From NCBI GenBank assembly GCA_965644295.1, contig CBFFRP010000322.1:6085-70084 (forward strand): 64,000 nt of DNA. Reading direction: 5' to 3'. A program made the position numbers and the translations under genes. The stretch comes from Paraphysomonas bandaiensis. Its lineage: Eukaryota; Protista; Chrysophyceae. Within the stretch, counting starts at the first letter, position 1. Each line of letters opens with the position of its first letter. The notes below the pieces were generated by a model. It ran no database searches and was not told the DNA's origin. It was given only the letters and a program-made list of their open reading frames with translations. This document shows positions 33,604 to 46,112 of the stretch, piece by piece.

Positions 33604-36544
33604 TTACAATTGAGGGCTCCAACACATGACATTGCCATCGGCACCCGAGGTAAAGATATCACTGGTGACTGGACAAAACGAAGAGCACAATATTTTGTCT
33701 GTATGACCAACTAATGATACTATTTTCACAAATTTAAAAGAATCGCTGGCAACTCGGCCGTGAGTAGCATCGCGATGTAGACTCCACACACTACCATTTC
33801 CATCAAACGAGGTCGTCAATGCGCAGAGCCCACCAAAAGGGGCTTCATTCCACAGAGCAACACTTCGCACGTCCGCACCATGTACAGAATACGAGCTTAG
33901 TAATCGCCTCTCTCTGGTGTCCAAAAGTGAGATAGACCCATTCGCATGGCCAACAATCGCCAATCCATCATCAGGAAGGGATTGGCATGAACATATGCCC
34001 TTACCGCCGAGGTCTACACTCCATACAACTGACGCCGTACGAGTATCTTGAGCAAGTAGAAGTCCCTTGTCACAACCTGTTAAAATGGTATTTGGAGCCA
34101 GCCATGACACACCGTGGATGTGTGCCTGATGTGCTGTCATCTTTGTGCATGAGCCTATTGTTAAAAAAGTTTAAACATGGCGAGGGAGAGTTTTAAAAAA
34201 CCTACCAGTCTGTACATCCCAAACACGCAATCTACAATCTCCAGCACCTCCAGAGGCAAGATCACTTCCTTCACCGTAAGGTGAGAATCGAACGGATCGC
34301 ACAGTGCCGTTGTGATCTTTCAACGTACCAGCAACCCCATATGTCGAGTGTTGCGTTCTTCCTGTGCTTCTACTACAAGTGATTAGTCCAACACTGTATA
34401 GCAAAGATAACATGTCATCACCTAATTATCCGAATTTGTCTATCATTTGATCCAGTGGCGAGAACTGCTGCATCCTTCGACCAGTCGCAGGTATATACGC
34501 TACATTTGTCGCCATGGTGGACCCCCTTTAGTTCACTCATTACTTCTACAGACTTGCTAGGCCTACTCATTCCCAATATACAAAGAGTGTTCGAGTTGCT
34601 GCCAATAGCAATACGAACCTGTTGGCCCTTGACCTGTTCAATGCTGTCAGTAACAAGGCTATCATCCAATGGATCGTCTGAGGAAAAGGTAGCAACACAG
34701 CGAAGGGGGGTGGAATCCCGTCTGATGCATACAGGACTGACATCGATACCACCTGGAGAAATCTCGCTCCAACGCACTGCGACACTTTTCTGTCGTCTGA
34801 TTACAGCCGACTGTGGCGCTTCTCTAGAGTGTGATTGGTATGCCATCCTGTCATATCTGGTGGGGGCTGGTTTGTGATGGTGTTCTACTCTGTCTACTCT
34901 ATGGGCACGATCAGTTACATTGCTATGGCCTTCTCTTGTGCTCTGGCTGATTGTGGAGGCTGTTAGCCCTGCTGTCGACACAGTTTGCACTCCAGTTGCC
35001 AACGAGTTCGCACTAAACACTGTGGTCTCGTCATGCTGCACTACCGCCTCTCGACCATCCTGTTCATCACGTTGCCCTGATAATCTACTATTCCCAGAGT
35101 CTCGTGAGTGCTGATTCGAATAGTTATGTCCCAAATGTTGTTCACGCGTATGCTGTACTACCGCCTCTCGACCATCCTGTTCATCACGTTGCCCTGATAA
35201 TCTACTATTCCCAGAGTCTCGTGAGTGCTGATTCGAATAGTTATGTCCCAAATGTTGTTCACGCGTATGCTGTACTACCGCCTCTCGACCATCCTGTTCA
35301 TCACGTTGCCCTGAGAATTTACTATTCCCAGAGTCTCGTGAGTGCTGATTCGAGTTGCCATATCCCAAATGTTGTTCGTGAACTTCAAGGTTTCTTCTCT
35401 TGTCAGGGGATCTTCCAACATCGGTAGTCCACTTCAAGGGTGGTTTCGTTGCAGACACGGCGTCAGTTTTAGAATGATTTCTACATTCAACGCCCTTCCC
35501 ACTATCCGATGCACAGCGATCGCTACACGATTGGTTATTAGGTTTACTCTTCAAAATCGTCAATCTGGGAAGGTTGCTGGGCATTCCTCGAGGGATGTCA
35601 GGATATAACAATCCGACCTCATCTACAGCTACTTTTATTGGAGCCGTTGGATAACTACTCTGAGAAGGCTTTGCACGATTTACGCAACACTCCAACCCCA
35701 ATGCAATCATTTCCTCTAGGCCATGTGTCGGGTAGTTAGACGAAGCGCAATATTCAGGTAGCACATCCTTCAGCAGATCTAATATAGCATCAACACATTC
35801 GAAGCGACCTCGTGTCACTGTCCATTCCGAATAGTCCGGGCTCTCCGAGAGAGACGAGAAAGTAAGGCAGTTGCAAAGCTTATTAAACTCCTATGTATAA
35901 ACATATTCGTGACCTCATACGAGGACACTGAATAAACTATATCGTACCACTTGAGAACACAAATCTTCTAACGACTTGAGGACTTCCATAACTCTATCCA
36001 TTACGACTTCGTCATTAGTGTCAGTGAATCCTCCCTCCGATAATTGTCGAAGTGGTCGCCAAGGAGTGACATCAATATGAGTATCCTTCGCTCCCTGCCA
36101 GCACAATGCTTCTAAATATTGCTGCTTTCGGATCTCAAATGTGACCTGTATGCATATCACCATCACACCATACTATGAATGTTGCATAGAATGTACACCA
36201 ATATATTACCTTATCGAAGTTTGAGACATACCTCTTGAGAGGACTCACATAAGCACATACGTCATCCCATCTGCATATGTATGAAACACAAATCTCCTCA
36301 ATCGACTGCACAATATACACACTCACCTGCCACTGAGTATAAGCTGCTGCAGACACAGGGCCGCATCTCCTCTCTCCACCTCCGCCTGTCCTGTCTCCAG
36401 AGAAAACATGCAGAGGGTGTCGAAGAGGGCGTGTCTTCTCATGTGTTCCTATGATCCATCTGCAGTTATACATGTGTGTGTATGTGTGTGTATGTGTACC
36501 ATGATGAGGCTGTTCAGTGACCGTTCATCCAACTCGAACTCCAT
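33604..36544 (-). CDS. WDR47: WDR47-like LisH/CTLH + WD40 protein, multi-exon
   Basis: Spliced N-terminus LNSLIM|EHMRRHALFDTL (LisH), LQQLILSGR|WDDV, IRKQQYLEALC, LKSLEDLC..FNKLCNCLT. C-terminal WD40s: IGSNSNTL, SVYTCDWS..LATGSNDRQI, HNGTVRSVRF. Confidence 0.85.
35032..35381. repeat. Coding tandem repeat, 117 bp (39 aa) x about 3, inside WDR47
   Basis: CCAGAGTCTCGTGAGTGCTGATTCGA recurs at 117-bp spacing. Peptide unit EQHLGHNYSNQHSRDSGNSRLSGQRDEQDGREAVVQHTR. Confidence 0.95.
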
Positions 36545-37292
36545 TATGTAATACGCCTGCGCCTGTTAGATGGGATGGTCTTAGTGGAGGGCTGTAAAGG
36601 GCACTCTACCACACCCAGTAAGCTGCACTATGATACTTTGATATAATATGAGCAGAGGGTTACAGTCTACAGGCACAAGAGCAGGGTGGGGATGTCGTAC
36701 TGCTGTACTGTACACACTGTACAGCAGTACATACTGTATATGTATGTGTATCTAGAGCAGAGGATCTTATTGCAGTACTTTCTATTCACTGGAAATCAGC
36801 TATTTATATGTATATAAACAGCAGTAAACCTCTAGTTTTTTTGTATTAAACGCGGTTTTGCCCAATTACTGCTGATCCAGTGGCATCCTTGATACATGCT
36901 GCTGTACATCCTAGAGCCATATATGCATATATATATATGGACTGCAGGCAAGCTTATATATGCATATAGCATATGAGTGGCACCACATACGGTATCTTGC
37001 TAGCTAAGATGATCAAAATCAATAACGTTAGACACGAATTTCATGACAGTCACAGTAATTCAGAGTCATATATAAGGAGAGACTGTGTGAGGGGTTGGAC
37101 AGCTGTGTCAGTAGCTCATTGCTGTTATCTCTTCAGATACACAAACGCTTTGAACTGATAATTCAATCCCATAGAAGCCTCGACTGGATTATACGTCTAT
37201 GAGTGGGAGGTTGTATATATATATACTAATTATCATATTTACAGTCCACAAGCATATTCACATCAAAGAATCCATAACACTCAATAGTGCAA

Positions 37293-40200
37293 CTAAAGAT
37301 CATCAGAATTCCCCATGGTACTCAGAACAGAGTCAAAAGTTCCACTGCTGTACGTGCTTCTATCATGAATCTGTGATATGACACTATCATTACTACCACT
37401 GTCAACGCTTACAATATGTTGGCCCCTTGATATACGTGCTAATAGCCTTTCTCGAGCTCTAATCGCATCACTTACTTCTTGGGTTGTAAAGTGTCCACGC
37501 GATGTGTCATAAGCACTAATAACATAAAGTTTGCTCTTCGTCGCAGGCGAAGATACAGATTGACTGAGTGATTGATGCGATGAGTCATCCGAAGATTTGA
37601 CCAGAGTCTCCATAAATAGAGAAATTCTGTCAGGGAGCGAAAAACGTGAGCTCGAATACTGATCGTCTCTGTATGCTGTCGACGTCCCCTGTTTATCTAC
37701 GTCCTCCATGGAGGCGTCATTGGATTGATGAGGCTGCCATGCCATTGATCGGGAAGATTCGTCGTTAGAAGTTTGGGATTCCAGCTCCGCTACATATCCC
37801 GATATAAATATAGATGTCACAGTTTGCATGAAAAGAAGCACGCCAATGAAGTACCAGAGCACAAAGAATATCCTCATGTGCAATTGTGTAACTGATGTCA
37901 TTCCTTCGGACACCACATCCCACCCGCTAACATGTAGGAGACTCGTCAGGGTGACATAGGCGGACGGAACGGTATTAAAATTAAGATCGTAGTAGTTATT
38001 TTTTCCATAATCAGTATCTTGAAGAGCCTAAATCATATTATTAGTCGTTCTGTCGCAATATCTGTCTCAAATGTCCACCAAATTTACGCAAACATAAAGC
38101 ACAGATCAATATACGAAAGATCAAACTTCTTACCTCATACTGACTTCGATTCTCATCACGGTTCACCAATCCTCCAAATAAAGACACACCAACGAGTGCA
38201 AATACGTGCATGATACACACAAAAGTAACTACCAGTGCTCCAAGTGATTTCGAAATTCGAGTCGTCGTTCTAATAGCAAAGGAAAAGTTGGAAGATGGAT
38301 ACAAGTAGTCAATGTTTCTAATCACCAATAAAATTCGGATCAACGAAATTATGCTATGTATTCATTACTTACGATTAACAAAATAAAATACTTATATACC
38401 TGGTCCACAAATGCGCCGTTTTGTAGGGTTTAGCTACACCCCCTTGTAGTTGTGCAGGGTTGTCGACGTATATTAGCATTACCCACAGGAACATTACAAC
38501 TGCGATGCAGATGTTGAACCATCCCCATGGTCTTGAAATCAAACGTGTGGGTCCCAATAATACCAAAAGAAAGGCAATATCAGAAACCATGATGACAGCC
38601 ATAATGGCTTTAATCCAATCTGTCTCGGCATTTGCGGAATATATCGATGGGTTGATACACAAGCACAAGCCACCAAGAAAGCACAAAACTCCATCCACAG
38701 TAGCATTATACGCTGGTGACGATGCTATATTGAATAATATTTTAAATTCAGCACTTTGAAATACACGCGGAAATCTTTCTAGATAATGACCTTGTACCTA
38801 TACATGTAACAGGTTATCACAATGTCAAACAACAGAAAACATTGCATACCCGCTCTTCAACTAATATTTGTGTAAGATGCAGTATCCACTTAAACTGCTC
38901 TTCGTATATACGTCCATTGCTCCTAACATCTAACCCTGCGGCAAGAACTGCAATCTCATCATCACTCGGAATTTTATAATATACTTGGCGAAACTCTGGG
39001 TAATAGAAATACAGCTCGTGAAGCAAGTCTCGGACTTGATTACACGACAAATATCCACGACCGACTACATCCATAGTGGAAAAAGCAAGTTTGATATTGT
39101 TCTCCCGATTAGACTGTTTTCTACTGTTTATAGTTTGCATACCGTGTTCATATTCAGCCATAACAATTGCCAAAACAAGATTCAACATTAAAACACTTCC
39201 AGCGGACAAATACCCAAAAAAGTATATGAAAGAACTGCGGTTAACTGAATAGTAAGGTATAATTTGATTTGGTAACCCTGCTGTTGTTATTGATACGAAA
39301 ACATTCCACGTAGTGTGGTAATAAGTATCAAAAAAATGAGTTTGCTCCCTGTCAACTTTGTATTCGTCGAACTCGCAGACGACGTAGCCAACTGTTGATG
39401 CAACAACTACCAACACCATCAGAAAAAGAAGACTAAGTCCATACCTAAATATGTATATTAATGTAAATATCACATTTTGAGCATGGTGTTGACAACCTTG
39501 GAAGTGCTTGCATCAGTACTCTGAGATTCGAGGCACTTTCGTAGTCAAACCATATTATGTACACGACGCTCAGCCAGGCAGATGGTCGAGATAATTGTGA
39601 TATTCTACTCACTGAGCCGTTTCCAAACGAATAAATAACAGAAATACACTCAATTATATTGATGATTATCAAGAGAACTCTTACAACCCGCTTTGTGCTG
39701 ATGTTATGGAAGTATTGGTTACTCGACAAAAAGGATAGTGTCTGACTGCAAAGCTCGAATGCACGGTATCTGGACAGAGTGTGGAAGTCATTGGCATCGC
39801 CTGCTGTAGACTCTTTGGTGAGGCGTTCAGACATGTATTTCACCTCTAAAACCAAGCCAATTGTAATCACTACAATACAGATGAGTGCAAAATCAGCGGA
39901 AGCACGGGCTGACAATAAAGTGAAATTCGCCATAGGGTAGATATTTCTATTGTCATAGTCCGCCGGAGGATCATCGACAATCCACACTGGCTTCGATATA
40001 AATGATAAAATGAGTAGTCCCCAAGCAGCAGATTGAAACGCACCGGCAAACTACACAATACAACAGTCTGGTTATCAATCAAGTAGCAGTATCACATTCT
40101 ATTTATTTGACACTAATATCAGGGCCTTACCCTGTGTCTAATTTGAAAGCAAGAATGAGCCGTGGTTGTAAAAAACTCATGGCGCCCTCTTCCACGCCTA

Positions 40201-43200
40201 GCAGCATGAAGGAGGGCGGCTGCACTCATGACAACAGTTATTTTGCTCTCATCCTGGCGTTTACGGAATAAAAAAAATACAAACAATTGTTTGATATATT
40301 ACCTCACCATCGACGTGCGTTTCTGTTCTACTACACCAGCTACTATCATCATGCTGTTGTACAGAAGAGTCTATAGCCGACGGCACCCGCTTTCTATCAG
40401 CTGATTCATCTCCACTACTTTCATGTACTGAAGGACATAAACCAGGAGCTGCAGTCATCATAGTGGCATCTCTCATGTAACCATCGTTGTTACCATGCGC
40501 TGTCAATCGACAGGAATTAGCGCGCCGTTTCTGCACACCTACTACACCATCAATCGTTTCTGACGATGGAGAGGCCCATACCTGAGAATTGTAACTCGCT
40601 GACAGCTCGTATACTCTCCCCTTCCCACAGAAGAGAACTACGGTGTAACCAGTCCGATACTCCGTCCTGATATTCGCCGGTATTCAGTTGTCCTTGATCA
40701 CAGATCTTCGATTCAACGGACAGACTTCCGCCTAATGGATTCACATTTTCTGATAAAATTGATTCGTCATATACACTCATATCTTGCGATTTTCGGGTAA
40801 CCCAAAACGATATAACAGAAGTCAGTAACGAGGCAGTCAAAAGATTTAGGAAAAGGATAACTCCGCACGAATACCAAGCACTGACGAATATTTTTACCAG
40901 TGCAGGGTCACCGCATGATATCAATCCATCAGCAATAATATGCATGTTGCTGACTAACAACAGAGTATACAATGTGCCCATCGATGAAAAAAAATCGTTG
41001 AAATTTAATGGGTAATAATCATTTTTTCCGTATGATGATTGAGATATGGATGGGTAAGTTGTCGTGCCCTCACTTTGTACTAAGCCTCCAAACAACTACG
41101 TACCCAATCAACACTGAATAACACTTACTCGGCATCAATACTACCTTCATGCCTACTATTGCAAACCCGACTCCAATTATTAACAAAAGAAGTGTTGTAA
41201 AAAGAACGTCGGCCGCACCTGCAGTATTTATTATACGAACGGAAATAAAGTAATATCCATTACCTAGTATGCAATATCGTACTGCAATTTTTAATCGTCT
41301 CTTTCGCAACCTCATCGCATTCAACGACATCACATTTCTGGGTAACACCAATGCTCGGAGAACAAGCATACACTGAAACAGGACTATTTCGTAACATCTC
41401 TTGAAAGCCGAATTGGATTCGTCATCCGTTTCGGCAGACCCGTATCGGCTCTCGTGCTGCAGCAGTTCCCTGAAAGACGAATCATGCAGATATCTTCCCG
41501 TGACGTAGTACACGAAAACAGAAGAAACCTGTATAACCATAATTACATGTACACAGAATGTGCTAAAACAAGGCACTTCCTACCATGCCAATAGCAACGA
41601 AAATATCAAGTGTACTCCCATAGCTTTTAATCATGCTGAAAGAGATTAGTCAGTAAATTTAGATATAGATGATTACCTTCTCCAACCTCTGCATACCAAC
41701 CGCACAGCGGTTTCAAGGAGTGCAAAGGCAGTAATACATAGCATGAAAACTTTACCAGGATAAAATAAAAAGCATATCATAAAGAAAAAGAAAATTAGGT
41801 CGGTGACAAAGTTGAACCTCTTAGATATTACTAAATTATGTGCAACCAGACATTGCCTTGACCATTCAGGCCACAACGATGCCCACTTTAACACACACGC
41901 CGAAGGAAATTTTGACTCCATAGAAAGATATCTGGTGGCCAGCCAGCACTGTCGCCACTCCTCATTGAAGTAAATTGGGTATGATGTGCAGGATTGAGTT
42001 TCTCTATCGCTTTCCGAAATTGCTGGCTCAGCAATTTCATTGTCATATTTGCTCAAGCAGGCCAAGTCTACTAAATGTGTGTCCGCTTTGAAAACAATAG
42101 TCAAGAAAAATTGCTGAAACATGGCTAGCGGTATGATGCAGTCCTGATTCTCAACTGATGGTACAACTGACTGAAGAGTAGATTTGTTGCGAATTAATCT
42201 ACCCAACCCATTGGGAGTTACAGGCAATGCCCCCGAGCACAACATCTTTACCAGGGATATCACAGGCATATATACAGGCACATCGTAAAGATCTCGCCAG
42301 TCCTCAGATACAAAATCAGATGGCGTAGTATCAGCAGAAAGAGATGATATTCCATGGGCTCTATTATAGCTACATTCAAGTACTGCTAACAATAAATTTA
42401 CGTCAGAATTGAAGTCGTAATCATTTTTATGACGTGGTCTCCTTAGCCCTCTGATATCGCCAATTCGCGAGGAATATACATGAAGAAGTTTCCGAAAGCA
42501 TACACCAGGAATTCCAGCAGCTTGACCTGAGCCTGTGGAAGAGCTGTTGGCGTCAGAGATAATTCGGTATGCGGCATTAATATTTCGAACTGCTAACTCT
42601 ACAACTCGATGGCGGGATGCCTGCTGTTGCTTCCTGCGATCACATTTCCGACTCAACAAAATCGTAAAAATACACTACACTTTTAAAAACTAACCTAAAG
42701 TGTGCAAAAACTAATGCAGATGCAATGTTAAGCATTCCAAAGGAGCATACCAACACGAATGAGAAGAAAAATATGAAATAAAGCTGAGATTCCTGTGCAG
42801 AAGTGTATAAGCATATCATATGATCTCGGTATTACTCAAAACGAACAGTTTATCTACGCCACAGTAACCTAGACGTCTCATAGACACTATTTCAGTATAA
42901 CACACTACTTCACGACATGGCGTGAGTTCATGCAAATAGAGGTCAATATCCAAGAAAGTGATACTTGAATTAGTAATACTGTCAAGTACCTGGTAGGCAG
43001 AAACTAGGGGATCTGGCCAATCGGCGGCATTCATGACCGTTAGAAGCGTCCAGAGCCCATCTTGTAAAGAAGAAAAGTACCGGTGGCTAGTTTTGCTGGC
43101 AGGATCGAATAACTGGAGTGCTATGAATATATCAGTAAAATGAGAATGCCAAGAAGCTCATATCTATTAGCATCATAAAAGAACAGAGTGACTTACCTAA

Positions 43201-44051
43201 AACAGAATAGAACAAAAGGGCAAGAGCAAGAAGTTTCATGAGAGTTATAAAGCGTAGAAGGGTGGCGAAAGTTATACGTATCATTCCATGAAAGTGCTTT
43301 TCTATCAGGAGTACAAAAATGCATCCTAGAGGAGAGAACGTGCTCAGAGAGCTACCAAGAATACTATATTTTACGGATGGAATGAGTAAAGCGCAGGATC
43401 GTATAATCAACTCGACGAGCTTCAAGATAAACACAACGATGTAAATATACAGCGACCATCGGGCGTCCATTCTTTCGGGACTATTCATGAAACTCCAAGC
43501 ATACTTCTTGCAACTCCCATCGTTGCCGCTTTCAATAGGTAAATACACAATTAGCTCAAACCCAGCTTCGAGAAACAAAGCAAGACCAAGAAAAAACATC
43601 ACCACAGCAAACAAGGCAATGTTAATTTCTTCGCTCATATATGATAAATCGGACATTGGAAACCTATTGTACAAATTATCATTTAAAAAAAATTCAAGTG
43701 ATCACACCTATCAGTATCATTCCATCCCCGGTGGTGGTAAGTCCAATAAGGTTTCTGAAAAGCTTCTACCAGTACCATCCCCCATGCCGCTAACCGAAAC
43801 ACGTACTGATACTGTACGACACAACATACATACCGTTAAACAGCACTCTATGGAGTAGCGATGTACCCTTATTCTCTTCTCATGGCAGTCTCGTTGAAAG
43901 GTGTTAGTGAAGACAACCCCCAGACCATCCCCTGCGAGTATAGTGGATCATGTCATAGCATATGTATGTGTATATATGGAGGGCTCGTACCATCCACAGC
44001 CTGACGAAGTAACGGCACTGCCTTCTCGTAGCAACTGAGCGTATCGGTCAT
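37293..44051 (-). CDS. Two tandem two-pore channel (TPC) units, probably one fused four-domain (4x6TM) channel gene
   Basis: Unit A (44051 to about 40800): YEKAVPLLRQAVDGDGLG, FQKPYW, pore I LWTLLTVMNAADWPDP, pore II FGGLV..YYPLNFNDFFSSMGTLYTLLLVSNM. Unit B (about 40230 to 37293): SAAALLHAARRG, ISKPVW, pore I WNVFVSITTAGLPNQIIP, two EF-hand-like loops, pore II FGGLV..YYDLNFNTVPSAYVTLTSLLHVSGWD. In-frame introns at 40539-40581 and 40254-40302 link A to B. TPC homology is more certain than the fusion. Confidence 0.8.
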
Positions 44052-44231
44052 GGAGTTGTAGGGTCAGGAAACATGATATGATGGCTTGTAATGGGCAAAA
44101 GATCACGTGGCTGCACTATCATGATACAAACACACAGATATATACACACAGACACCCGCCTAATGAAGATTATTGGAAAAAACTTGATACCATGTACAGT
44201 ATAGAGGTACCGTACATAGGTACACACATCA

Positions 44232-44316
44232 ATGTATGTATGTATGTATGTATGTATGTATGTATGTATGTATGTATGTATGTATGTATGTATGTATGTA
44301 TGTATGTATGTATGTA
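44232..44316. repeat. (TATG)n, left half of a tract split by the pogo element
   Basis: About 21 units ending in TA directly at the TIR. Confidence 0.99.
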
Positions 44317-46112
44317 CAGTCAGTTCTCGATATCGTCAATGGATTGTACCATAGGGTTACAATTTCCAATAACGGACATTTTTACCATAAAAAAACCGGG
44401 TTTTATTTTTAAAAAAACCAGGTTTATTTATAAAAAGCCAGTTTTTGTTTAAAAATTCAGATATTTTGCATAAAACTCAGTTTTTGGATATTAAAACCAC
44501 GGTTTTATACTAAAAAACCCTAAGTCTATGGTAAAAATTCTATATATCACAATTGAATTTAGCAGGATACTGTGTTTAAGGCTGAAAAACTTTCTATTAC
44601 GGCACTACAGATTAATTATGTGGAAAGCCTTGTTATTACATGATAAAAATGCGTTGTCTTAACGACACAGGACAGCTGTATAACATAGTTACTACATAAC
44701 GCTGCTATGTAGAATTAGATCTCTGCACCGAGTAAAAGTGCTGTATTGTTCGTTGTGACGAAGACCTTTTGCGCTTCTCTAAGTAACGTTTAGTAACTTC
44801 AGAAGCGGCCTTAACAAACGTGTGGTGCAAAGCATCAGCATCCTCATCACTACTTCCCATAGTAAAGTCATATACAACACGCATGGCATCATTGAATTGA
44901 TTCAAAGTTACCTTAGATGAAGTTGCAGGGTCAATATTTGTATCAGTTTGACAATGATCATCCACCATCGGTATTTGCGGAGAAATAGAAAAAGATTCGA
45001 ATCGCTCCATGGCTTCCTCAATTTCAGTTTCGACAACCAATGGATCATTTTCCACATTACACCATAATTCCACTGCGCTTGCTCGCTGTTCGGAAGTAAA
45101 TGAACTCATCTCAGTAATTCCTGAAACTATATCAGGCACAGCGGAAAGCTCCCTAACTTTGATACACAGAGTTGACATTAGGTTGCACATTGAAGCGAGA
45201 TCGTCGTCAGATATCTTATATATATTTCTATCCGCTGAGCCATATTCAGTAATCAGTTGCTGCTGCATTGGTAGTGGCAAACAATTCGCTTTACGCCAGC
45301 ATCTTCCAATTGCTAAGTTACTGCAATACCGTTCACCTTTCCATACATCATCCAGTATATTCATACAGTCAAGGATATGTGGAATTAAACCATACATGAT
45401 TCCTTTGCAACCTCTCCGCGCTGTTGGTATGGCCAATTTAACACTTTCATATTGCTCGACATCATCAAAAACAGAAAGCAGTTTGTGCAAGAGACTGTAT
45501 TTATATCCTACTTTTATGGAAGCGATTATTCCCATGTCCATTGGCTGATGACGCGAAGTCAGCCTTGGCGGGAAACACACTAATTTATTGTACGAAGGGT
45601 ACAACTGTTCGTCAATGCCGACATGTGACGAGCAGTTGTCAAGCAATATAATACACTTAAGTGATCCAAATCGTCGTCTGTACCAAGGATCAAATACCGA
45701 ATTGATCCACCATATAGTAATATTTCTATTCTTTCCATATAGTATAGTATAGTTTATATTCTTTCACGAAGTTACATTTCTGCACATCCGAGAAAGTACT
45801 CAAAGATTTCTTGCGCTTGGTACCGATGCTGCATTCAACTGACATCGTTACGTACAACAATGTGAGTATATATTACGAATGTGTTCATGATACTCTCTCT
45901 GTTGCATACTCTCTGCACATACAGGCAGCAGTATATTGCTAACTTCTATAATCACTTTTACAAAAGTCACGCAAAATAGGGGATTTTTATTAAAAAACTG
46001 TAGTTTTATATAAAATCGGGGGTTTTATCTTAAAAACCCTGTACCAAGCCTATTTCATTTCCCATAACGGACATTTTTACCATACCTCATTGACGATATC
46101 GAGAACTGACTG
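44317..46112 (-). mobile_element. pogo/Tigger-like DNA transposon, internally deleted, 1796 bp
   Basis: Perfect 25-bp TIRs (CAGTCAGTTCTCGATATCGTCAATG at 44317-44341 and its inverse at 46088-46112), TA on both sides, and a DDE_1-type ORF inside. Confidence 0.95.
44705..45845 (-). pseudogene. pogo transposase with internal deletion and frameshift
   Basis: The ATG at 45845 (MSVECSIGTKRKKS...) stops after 39 codons. Another frame resumes WWINSVF...LLDNCSSH...FPPRLTSRHQPMDMGII, with 33 residues between the 2nd and 3rd catalytic Asp. The HTH region and first Asp are missing. Confidence 0.85.

Follow-up and report, generated by a model that had tools for sequence, protein, structure and literature searches.

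Two-pore channels (TPCs), represented by the plant TPC1 or slow vacuolar (SV) channel and by the endolysosomal TPCs of animals, are two-domain proteins that work as dimers. In the textbook account, the four-domain Na+ and Ca2+ channels arose by two rounds of duplication, with the TPCs as the surviving two-domain stage; the second round took place once and very long ago, and is therefore not directly open to study. Here, we describe a gene of the chrysophyte Paraphysomonas bandaiensis, located on the minus strand of a 64,000-nucleotide (nt) stretch of genomic DNA (the window; all coordinates are positions in it), that encodes two TPC units on a single chain. Probably, its product is a four-domain TPC-TPC cation-channel subunit belonging to an old family born of duplication and fusion, and would fold as a single-chain pseudo-tetramer.

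Stramenopile TPCs have been examined in a 2024 survey of diatom Ca2+ channels (PMC11085791), which describes TPC1 and TPCL, both two-domain proteins. The latter is a divergent, lineage-specific TPC of the vacuolar membrane with a VND filter II and no EF-hands, and TPCs and diatom TPCL are reported there as vacuolar or endolysosomal. TPCL resembles the protein described here as a case of stramenopile TPC diversification and in that no EF-hands were detected in unit A of the window gene either; however, the TPCL pore and S4 motifs (NNFNDYPSG..VVNDWQ and GRAIDMIRMLR) do not match the TPC-TPC family, and TPCL was rejected as a member on these grounds. Furthermore, five family-specific motif strings are all missing from the published TPC alignment. 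The closest conceptual precedent is provided by the independent two-repeat Kv and CNBD tandems that PMC7576140 reports from protists of the SAR group (stramenopiles, alveolates and Rhizaria), where internal oligomerisation is argued to be common. These share with TPC-TPC an independent internal oligomerisation, and their first repeats and second repeats fall into distinct clades whose branching is mirrored, as is the case for the four domains D1-D4 of our family; in contrast, they represent 1-to-2 (or 1-to-4) concatenations of K+/CNBD channels, while in TPC-TPC it is a TPC that underwent 2-to-4 concatenation.

Compared with TPC1, TPC2 and TPC3, each half of the new protein is a complete TPC unit, consisting of an N-terminal helix, a six-transmembrane (6-TM) domain I, a cytosolic linker and a 6-TM domain II. 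The domain II pore follows the pattern FGG..NFND..V-x-N, and an EF-hand pair in the linker is seen family-wide in both units, that of unit B here being a degenerate candidate. Unlike these channels, TPC-TPC carries four domains per chain rather than two, and units A and B are 20-34% identical. The Cav, Nav and NALCN channels, for their part, share with TPC-TPC the four homologous 6-TM repeats per chain, a long tether of the II-III type, four non-identical pore loops and, in outline, an origin by duplication of a two-domain ancestor. They differ from it in that the TPC-TPC domains group with TPC domains and not with Cav/Nav repeats, and in that TPC-TPC possesses no EEEE/DEKA ring, has sparse S4 charges and positions EF-hands between D1 and D2 and between D3 and D4.

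A fused TPC gene and its transcripts

Positions 37293-44051 of the window constitute one gene, in which TPC units A (D1-D2) and B (D3-D4) are joined on one chain (Table 1). All 17 introns are of the GT..AG type, and 16 of them span 41-106 nt; the remaining one (42793-42989, 197 nt) is two to four times as long as the others. Fifteen of the 17 were listed as joints of RNA contigs, and introns 43932-43990 and 42793-42989 were placed from loose contig ends together with the sequence. Removal of all 17 yields an mRNA model of 5,756 nt with a single open reading frame (ORF) of 1,882 amino acids (aa), preceded by a 55-nt leader that carries an in-frame stop; the transcript contig stops approximately 50 nt past the stop codon.

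RNA contigs of four sequencing runs, out of 14 available, were compared with window positions 38000-43999 (6,000 letters); these are assembled contigs and not single long reads, and such contigs lose minor isoforms. Every contig matching the fused gene lacks introns and is therefore derived from spliced RNA, and 15 contig joints have ends that read CT..AC on the plus strand, which corresponds to GT..AG in the direction of the gene. The original prediction, which was made from the letters of the window, had placed the apparent stop of unit A inside a 43-nt intron, followed by a 236-nt exon and a 49-nt intron; all of these elements are found exactly where it put them. The joint that skips the 43 nt (40536/40580) occurs in runs X1, X3 and X4, and that which skips the 49 nt (40252/40302) in X1 and X3. 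Indeed, the two splices that had been foreseen (40582 to 40538 and 40303 to 40253) are present together in a 4,872-nt contig of X1, which extends from 38133 to 42632, and in a 5,758-nt contig of X3, the pieces of which cover 38133 to 43661 and whose loose ends reach exon 1, and both contigs pass the A-B junction. We estimate that a 78-codon linker exon would be open and in frame with both introns by chance in about 1 in 1,000 cases. Run X3 was classed automatically as 'probably DNA'. The 30- and 32-mers of the spliced junctions have no occurrence in the 62.5-Mb genome assembly. The joined sequences must therefore come from RNA, and the idea that the intron-less contigs stem from a processed retrocopy was rejected.

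Run X4, assigned by its label to another organism (B), agrees with the gene at >99% and differs from it by single bases at six positions (40449, 38300, 38323, 38927, 42573 and 43761), and X5, a marine poly(A) metatranscriptome, has the same C>T change at 40449. A near-identical strain thus appears under another label and in the sea.

A domain hidden Markov model (HMM), built by iteration and then used to cut every protein into domains, finds four 6-TM envelopes in the whole protein and two in each unit alone, in agreement with the four domains anticipated for the spliced product. The N-terminal helices, the KPxW after S1 and the FGGL..YY.LNFN motifs that had been picked out beforehand are all present in the spliced protein, and the reading of the locus as two strongly diverged TPC-like units lying head-to-tail holds, with identities of 20% between D1 and D3 and 33.5% between D2 and D4. 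An exon-by-exon Pfam scan produced weak matches only, with none for the D1 and D1-D2 linker exons of unit A, and a PDB sequence search with the D1 exon found nothing. No EF-hand was reported by Pfam in the unit A exon encoding aa 310-627. The EF-hand_7 match of unit B falls below the 30-bit cut-off; by eye, both of its loops depart from the canonical Ca2+-binding pattern, and they lack the usual acidic residues. Between D2 and D3 lies a low-complexity, unconserved tether of 192 aa, which varies from 92 to 594 aa across the family.

Table 1. Coordinates of the fused gene, its parts and its paralogue
Feature	Position	Strand	Details
Assembled spliced transcript contig	37241..44106	-	18 exons, 17 introns; ends computed from the coordinates of the X3 record (5,758 nt)
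Coding region of the fused gene	37293..44051	-	1,882 codons plus stop; ATG 44051, stop 37295-37293
Introns 1-6	43932-43990, 43812-43866, 43664-43707, 43121-43196, 42793-42989, 42634-42694	-
Introns 7-12	41636-41676, 41529-41583, 41219-41263, 41096-41144, 40539-40581, 40254-40302	-
Introns 13-17	40051-40130, 39445-39496, 38798-38849, 38354-38399, 38028-38133	-
Unit A	40582..44051	-	aa 1-929; N-terminal helix (aa 8-24), D1, long D1-D2 linker, D2, start of inter-unit tether
D1	42621..43887 (introns included)	-	aa 36-313; domain HMM envelope; pore motif MNAADWP at 43014-43034
D2	40817..41867	-	aa 565-851; S4 LRALVLPRN; FGGL..YYPLNFND; filter LLLVSNM at 40943-40963
43-nt intron GTATGG..TAGTAG	40539-40581	-	contains the apparent stop of unit A, TGA 40552-40550; absent from X1, X3 and X4 contigs
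Linker exon, 236 nt	40303-40538	-	aa 930-1008; open in frame; low-complexity tether
49-nt intron GTAATA..CGCCAG, linker exon to unit B	40254-40302	-	absent from X1 and X3 contigs
Unit B	37293..40253	-	aa 1009-1882; N-terminal helix, D3, EF-hand pair, D4, C-terminal tail, stop
N-terminal helix of unit B, MSAAALLHAARRGRG	40179-40229	-	start of unit B
D3	39135..40151	-	aa 1043-1337; pore motif VSITTAG at 39276-39296; Pfam Ion_trans 3.6e-8
EF-hand pair between D3 and D4	38856..39074	-	aa ~1358-1430; Pfam EF-hand_7 E 7.8e-6, 26.6 bits
D4	37779..38909	-	aa 1413-1721; S4 LIRILLVIRN; FGGL..YYDLNFN; filter TSLLHVSG at about 37923-37946
C71 paralogue	G000:C71:~120400-127700 (L001 1408-8718)	-	model of ~2,200 aa, 11 predicted introns

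TPC ancestry and relatives of the fused protein

PDB searches identify the fused protein as a relative of TPCs. A family member used as query matched plant and mouse TPC1, human TPC2 and zebrafish-type TPC3 at 1e-28 to 2e-21, with Cav3 at 5e-4. For the D2 and D4 exons of the window gene, the best matches are to TPC domain II (residues ~577-705), D4 being closest to TPC3/TPC1, and for the D3 pore/EF exon to TPC domain I (residues ~213-357); Cav and NALCN entries appear only marginally in these searches.

A quick tree of 181 domains was accompanied by a careful one, computed with IQ-TREE from 96 domains under LG+C20+F+G4, for which we quote supports as ultrafast bootstrap (UFBoot)/Shimodaira-Hasegawa-like approximate likelihood ratio test (SH-aLRT). 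In the careful tree, each of the fused domains forms a clade (D1 100/98, D2 99/94, D3 97/86, D4 98/90). D1 has D3 as its sister (100/99), and the pair lies inside TPC domain I (99/92), followed by a coral TPC1-like protein; D2 and D4 form a second pair of sisters (100/99), which lies inside TPC domain II (99/93), with the coral protein next at 100/93. A unit-B query was used to sample the canonical TPCs, of which only the coral protein carries a name. The Cav/Nav-type repeats, represented by repeats II-IV of two channels from the same genome only, fall outside the TPC and fused clades. The outgroup ORF, which has four repeats, matches Cav3.2 at 5e-182 and is thus a true Cav/Nav channel. This arrangement, in which A-I and B-I join TPC domain I, A-II and B-II join TPC domain II and Cav/Nav stays outside, is the one that had been expected at the outset, and it supports a 2-to-4 domain fusion that would be independent of the Cav/Nav origin. 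The two halves of the tree are mirror images of one another, and in each of the four subtrees the window gene is paired with a second locus of its own genome, C71 (bootstrap 100, 98, 48 and 100). The simplest history would therefore be one tandem duplication of a complete TPC, a fusion, and co-divergence of the four domains; the two loci of this genome would, again most simply, have duplicated after the fusion.

C71 is the one other such locus found in a genome search with both domain-II exons. It contains two copies on the same strand, the A-like one upstream of the B-like one, and aligns collinearly with all 1,882 aa of the protein at 26-43% identity. The two copies are linked by a 359-codon ORF, which runs from the D2 pore through the entire tether with no stop and ends at a GTGAGT donor, where a candidate 57-nt GT..AG intron keeps the frame into EYAAALMQCAKNGQ. 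Dynamic programming, with splice-site weights learned from the window gene, gives an open path of 2,199 aa as a computational model in which some predicted exon borders look wrong (D1 S6 region). Unit B of C71 retains a canonical second EF-hand loop, DINGDGRVYFEE.

Beyond this genome, public data contain at least 30 proteins with the same four-domain layout, of about 1,600-2,500 aa. In an exhaustive HMMER search with the unit-B exon encoding aa 1235-1432, the best full-length matches are proteins of about 1,570-2,480 aa, aligned at residues ~1,100-1,650, and canonical TPC-sized proteins (650-950 aa) rank lower. BLAST of the spliced protein against family members reveals full collinearity (A-tether-B), and single alignments cross the A-B junction in P0011 (aa 582-1729, E 3e-101), P0013 (8e-93) and P0009 (2e-94). 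Pfam recognises Ion_trans stretches, four in each of four scanned members and three in P0059, plus EF-hand pairs; the pairs are significant in both linkers of P0161, and significant pairs also occur in other scanned members. Two members, P0059 (NCBI GCA_013565615.1; 1,711 aa) and P0161 (on a 52-kb JGI contig; 1,717 aa), are uninterrupted genomic ORFs, so that the fusion does not depend on any splicing model. The three members with organism names are all Chrysophyceae, namely Chlorochromonas (Ochromonas) danica, Pedospumella encystans and Epipyxis sp.; the search for the same fusion in related stramenopiles that the original prediction had proposed is thereby answered, even if these homologues are only 25-35% identical to the window protein. 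The other entries are metagenome, Logan or NCBI records, which are 'hypothetical' or misnamed. For instance, P0017 (JGI) is wrongly labelled 'Na+-transporting methylmalonyl-CoA/oxaloacetate decarboxylase gamma subunit', and P0033 (NCBI RYH05590.1), a mis-binned eukaryotic fragment, bears the label 'hypothetical protein, partial [archaeon]'.

Half-size matches to unit B (P0022-P0034) were considered as unfused genes and are treated as probable fragments, because they lie on contigs of 2.5-5 kb and because P0028 clusters with the 2,042-aa P0187; none of them has been shown to be a complete gene. Stand-alone unit A proteins were sought with a word-indexed search (query P0013:78-830), which returned three proteins and identified none: P0135, a fused protein cut off in D3; P0190, of 545 aa, which was not read; and the coral TPC1-like protein. 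As judged by these comparisons, the family is old: the genome itself contains a paralogue, and numerous homologues exist outside it. Hence, of the duplication-fusion originally proposed for this locus, the 2-to-4 step is borne out by the domain tree, while its portrayal as a single-locus event gives way before the paralogue and the many homologues.

The P. bandaiensis genome holds well over a hundred Ion_trans matches. Several Cav/Nav-type four-repeat ORFs are intron-less (e.g. the 1,440-aa ORF of C258), and two Ion_trans repeats are found in each of many ORFs about 950-1,050 aa long; because of the many ORFs with two such matches, channel concatenation seems to be frequent in this organism. 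A 671-aa ORF on the plus strand of another contig (G000:C200:~121100-122700; L006) has two Ion_trans-type domains and a filter II that reads VGNNW, and its domains branch with long branches at the base of the TPC D1 and D2 clades. It is probably the only stand-alone TPC of this genome, and a divergent one.

Pore loops, voltage sensors and assembly

Alignments of the pore regions reveal motifs that are conserved in the family and specific to each domain (Table 2). At the position of the TPC filter asparagine, D1/D2/D3/D4 carry N/N/S/D in the family, D/N/G/G in the window gene and A/N/S/G in C71, as opposed to the two-fold-symmetric ring of TPCs. The signatures of the window gene are derived (AAD, VSN, TAG and VSG versus the family GSN, VNN, SSS and VSD), and those of C71 are intermediate (AAA, VNN, SSS and VSG). 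Filter II of the window gene reads VSN in D2 and VSG in D4, and corresponds neither to the V-N-N of animals and diatoms nor to the M-G-N of plants.

Table 2. Pore motifs of TPCs and of the TPC-TPC family
Domain	TPC reference	Family	Window gene	C71 paralogue
D1	TTANFP	NGSNWP	NAADWP	NAAAWP
D2	VVNNW	HVNNMH	LVSNMH	MVNNMD
D3		TSSSYP	TTAGLP	TSSSFP
D4		HVSDFD	HVSGWD	HVSGWD

The S4 segments of D2 and D4 carry an R-x5-(P)RN motif with two arginines only (PRN in D2 and IRN in D4 of the window gene), in place of the R-x2-R-x2-R of canonical TPC domain II. We read this motif as a putative shared derived character of the TPC-TPC family.

These features suggest the following scenario. A whole two-domain TPC gene would have been duplicated in tandem and its copies fused, after which the four domains would have diverged, each in a domain-specific way. 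TPC termini are cytosolic, so that a cytosolic tether can join two units and leave their topology unchanged. The single chain would then fold as a pseudo-tetramer, with D1-D2-D3-D4 around one pore that replaces the TPC homodimer, and in such a one-chain pore all four pore loops would be free to differ. Gating would probably be TPC-like but altered, with two S4 arginines in D2 and D4, no EF-hands left in unit A and degenerate ones in unit B. The family at large is expected to comprise TPC-like cation channels gated by voltage and Ca2+. In the product of the window gene, Ca2+ sensing is expected to be reduced or absent and the filter to be unusual. If the gene is taken as real, one chain probably equals one pore, since the fusion is kept everywhere despite a freely evolving tether, since neither unit was met as a complete stand-alone gene, and since a distinct pore signature has become fixed in every domain, a situation also seen in Cav/Nav channels. 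The data show the exon-intron structure, its splicing, the reading frame, the descent from TPCs and the reality of the family; for the window protein itself we infer this assembly, along with ion selectivity, gating and membrane location.

Three other accounts of the locus have to be weighed against that of a single-chain, single-pore channel. It is unlikely, though the most serious of the three, that the fusion protein is real and either pairs A-A and B-B between two chains, so as to form two TPC-like pores, or is cleaved in its tether into ordinary TPC subunits at 1:1. TPCs are known homodimers, and a tether that is long, unconserved and of low complexity could be accessible to proteases; however, every member seen keeps the fusion, across deep divergence and in both paralogues, the half-size matches lie on short contigs with none shown complete, and a conserved pore signature per domain is what a fixed four-position pore predicts (an argument rather than a test). 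Far less probable, and all but refuted, is a pair of adjacent TPC genes with overlapping transcripts that were merged by the assembler, the in-frame join being incidental. Contigs are no proof of a single molecule, an ATG (40229-40227) stands at the start of the N-terminal helix of unit B, and unit A gains a stop if the 43-nt intron is retained. Nevertheless, this intron is removed in all contigs covering it, from three runs, and an A-only mRNA from which it has been spliced has no stop codon before unit B; two separate genes would therefore need an unspliced form, and none was seen in the contigs. The frame is, moreover, maintained across two introns and 78 linker codons, and the paralogue and homologues have no stop between the units, two of them being single genomic ORFs. 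The least credible account, which the domain tree refutes and which we regard as next to negligible, is that of an ordinary but divergent four-domain channel of Cav/Nav/NALCN type whose halves are merely TPC-like. The four Ion_trans repeats on one chain and weak PDB matches to Cav3 and NALCN would suit it, but the domains nest in the TPC D1/D2 clades with 99-100% bootstrap, to the exclusion of the genome's true Cav/Nav repeats, and TPC matches are some 20 or more orders of magnitude better than those to Cav. Each half also possesses the TPC-type N-terminal helix and the FGG..NFND pore motif, and the EF-hand pair between the domains is a feature of the family at large.

Several observations weigh against the single-chain pseudo-tetramer that we favour, or narrow what it can explain. 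The same data also fit A-A and B-B pairing between two chains. The 43-nt intron does carry an in-frame stop, and since contigs drop minor isoforms, intron retention may yield an A-only product, or an internal start may serve unit B. The D1 exon of unit A is without a direct Pfam or PDB match, so that it is the family HMM and the tree that identify it as D1, and sampling with a unit-B query could have missed closer stand-alone relatives of unit A. Finally, the filter residues and EF-hands of the window gene are the most derived in the family, and its function may differ from that of other members.

Genomic surroundings and wider significance

In the vicinity of the gene, a (TACA)n microsatellite occupies about 44232-44300; it precedes the 5' end of the transcript contig by ~130 nt and falls in what is likely to be the promoter. 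A 313-aa ORF directly upstream of the gene (44705-45646, minus strand) has a partial match to DDE_1 transposases (E 1.3e-5) and is probably a transposon remnant, and a WD40 gene is located downstream (33604-35818, minus strand). The plus strand over the gene contains no sizeable ORF (at most 124 aa; these ORFs were not scanned).

No description of a TPC-TPC channel was found in the searchable literature, outside of which most subscription journals lie, so that this is not proof of novelty. Surveys of four-domain channels and of voltage-gated-like channel sets make no mention of TPC-derived four-domain proteins, and PMC11085791 makes none of four-domain TPCs. On balance, we believe the TPC-TPC family to be undescribed. 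As to the fuller proposition, namely an unreported and independent four-domain origin, in which a TPC was duplicated and fused in a chrysophyte-like stramenopile ancestor to give a single-chain pseudo-tetramer whose pore loops then diverged, we consider the chances to be about even.

At the level of annotation, the public records of the family bear 'hypothetical' or wrong names, and gene callers that ignore introns break the genes up or cut them short. If the proposition is true, these proteins re-enact, in living organisms open to experiment, the step from which the Cav/Nav channels are proposed to have arisen. The family would represent a second, independent 2-to-4 transition for which two-domain relatives are still recognisable; its members have diverged to varying degrees, two paralogues coexist in one genome, and domain-specific pore residues are already present. 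It would thus allow one to ask whether concatenation frees four pore loops for asymmetric selectivity, how voltage sensors specialise after fusion, and what cellular role a single-chain TPC performs.

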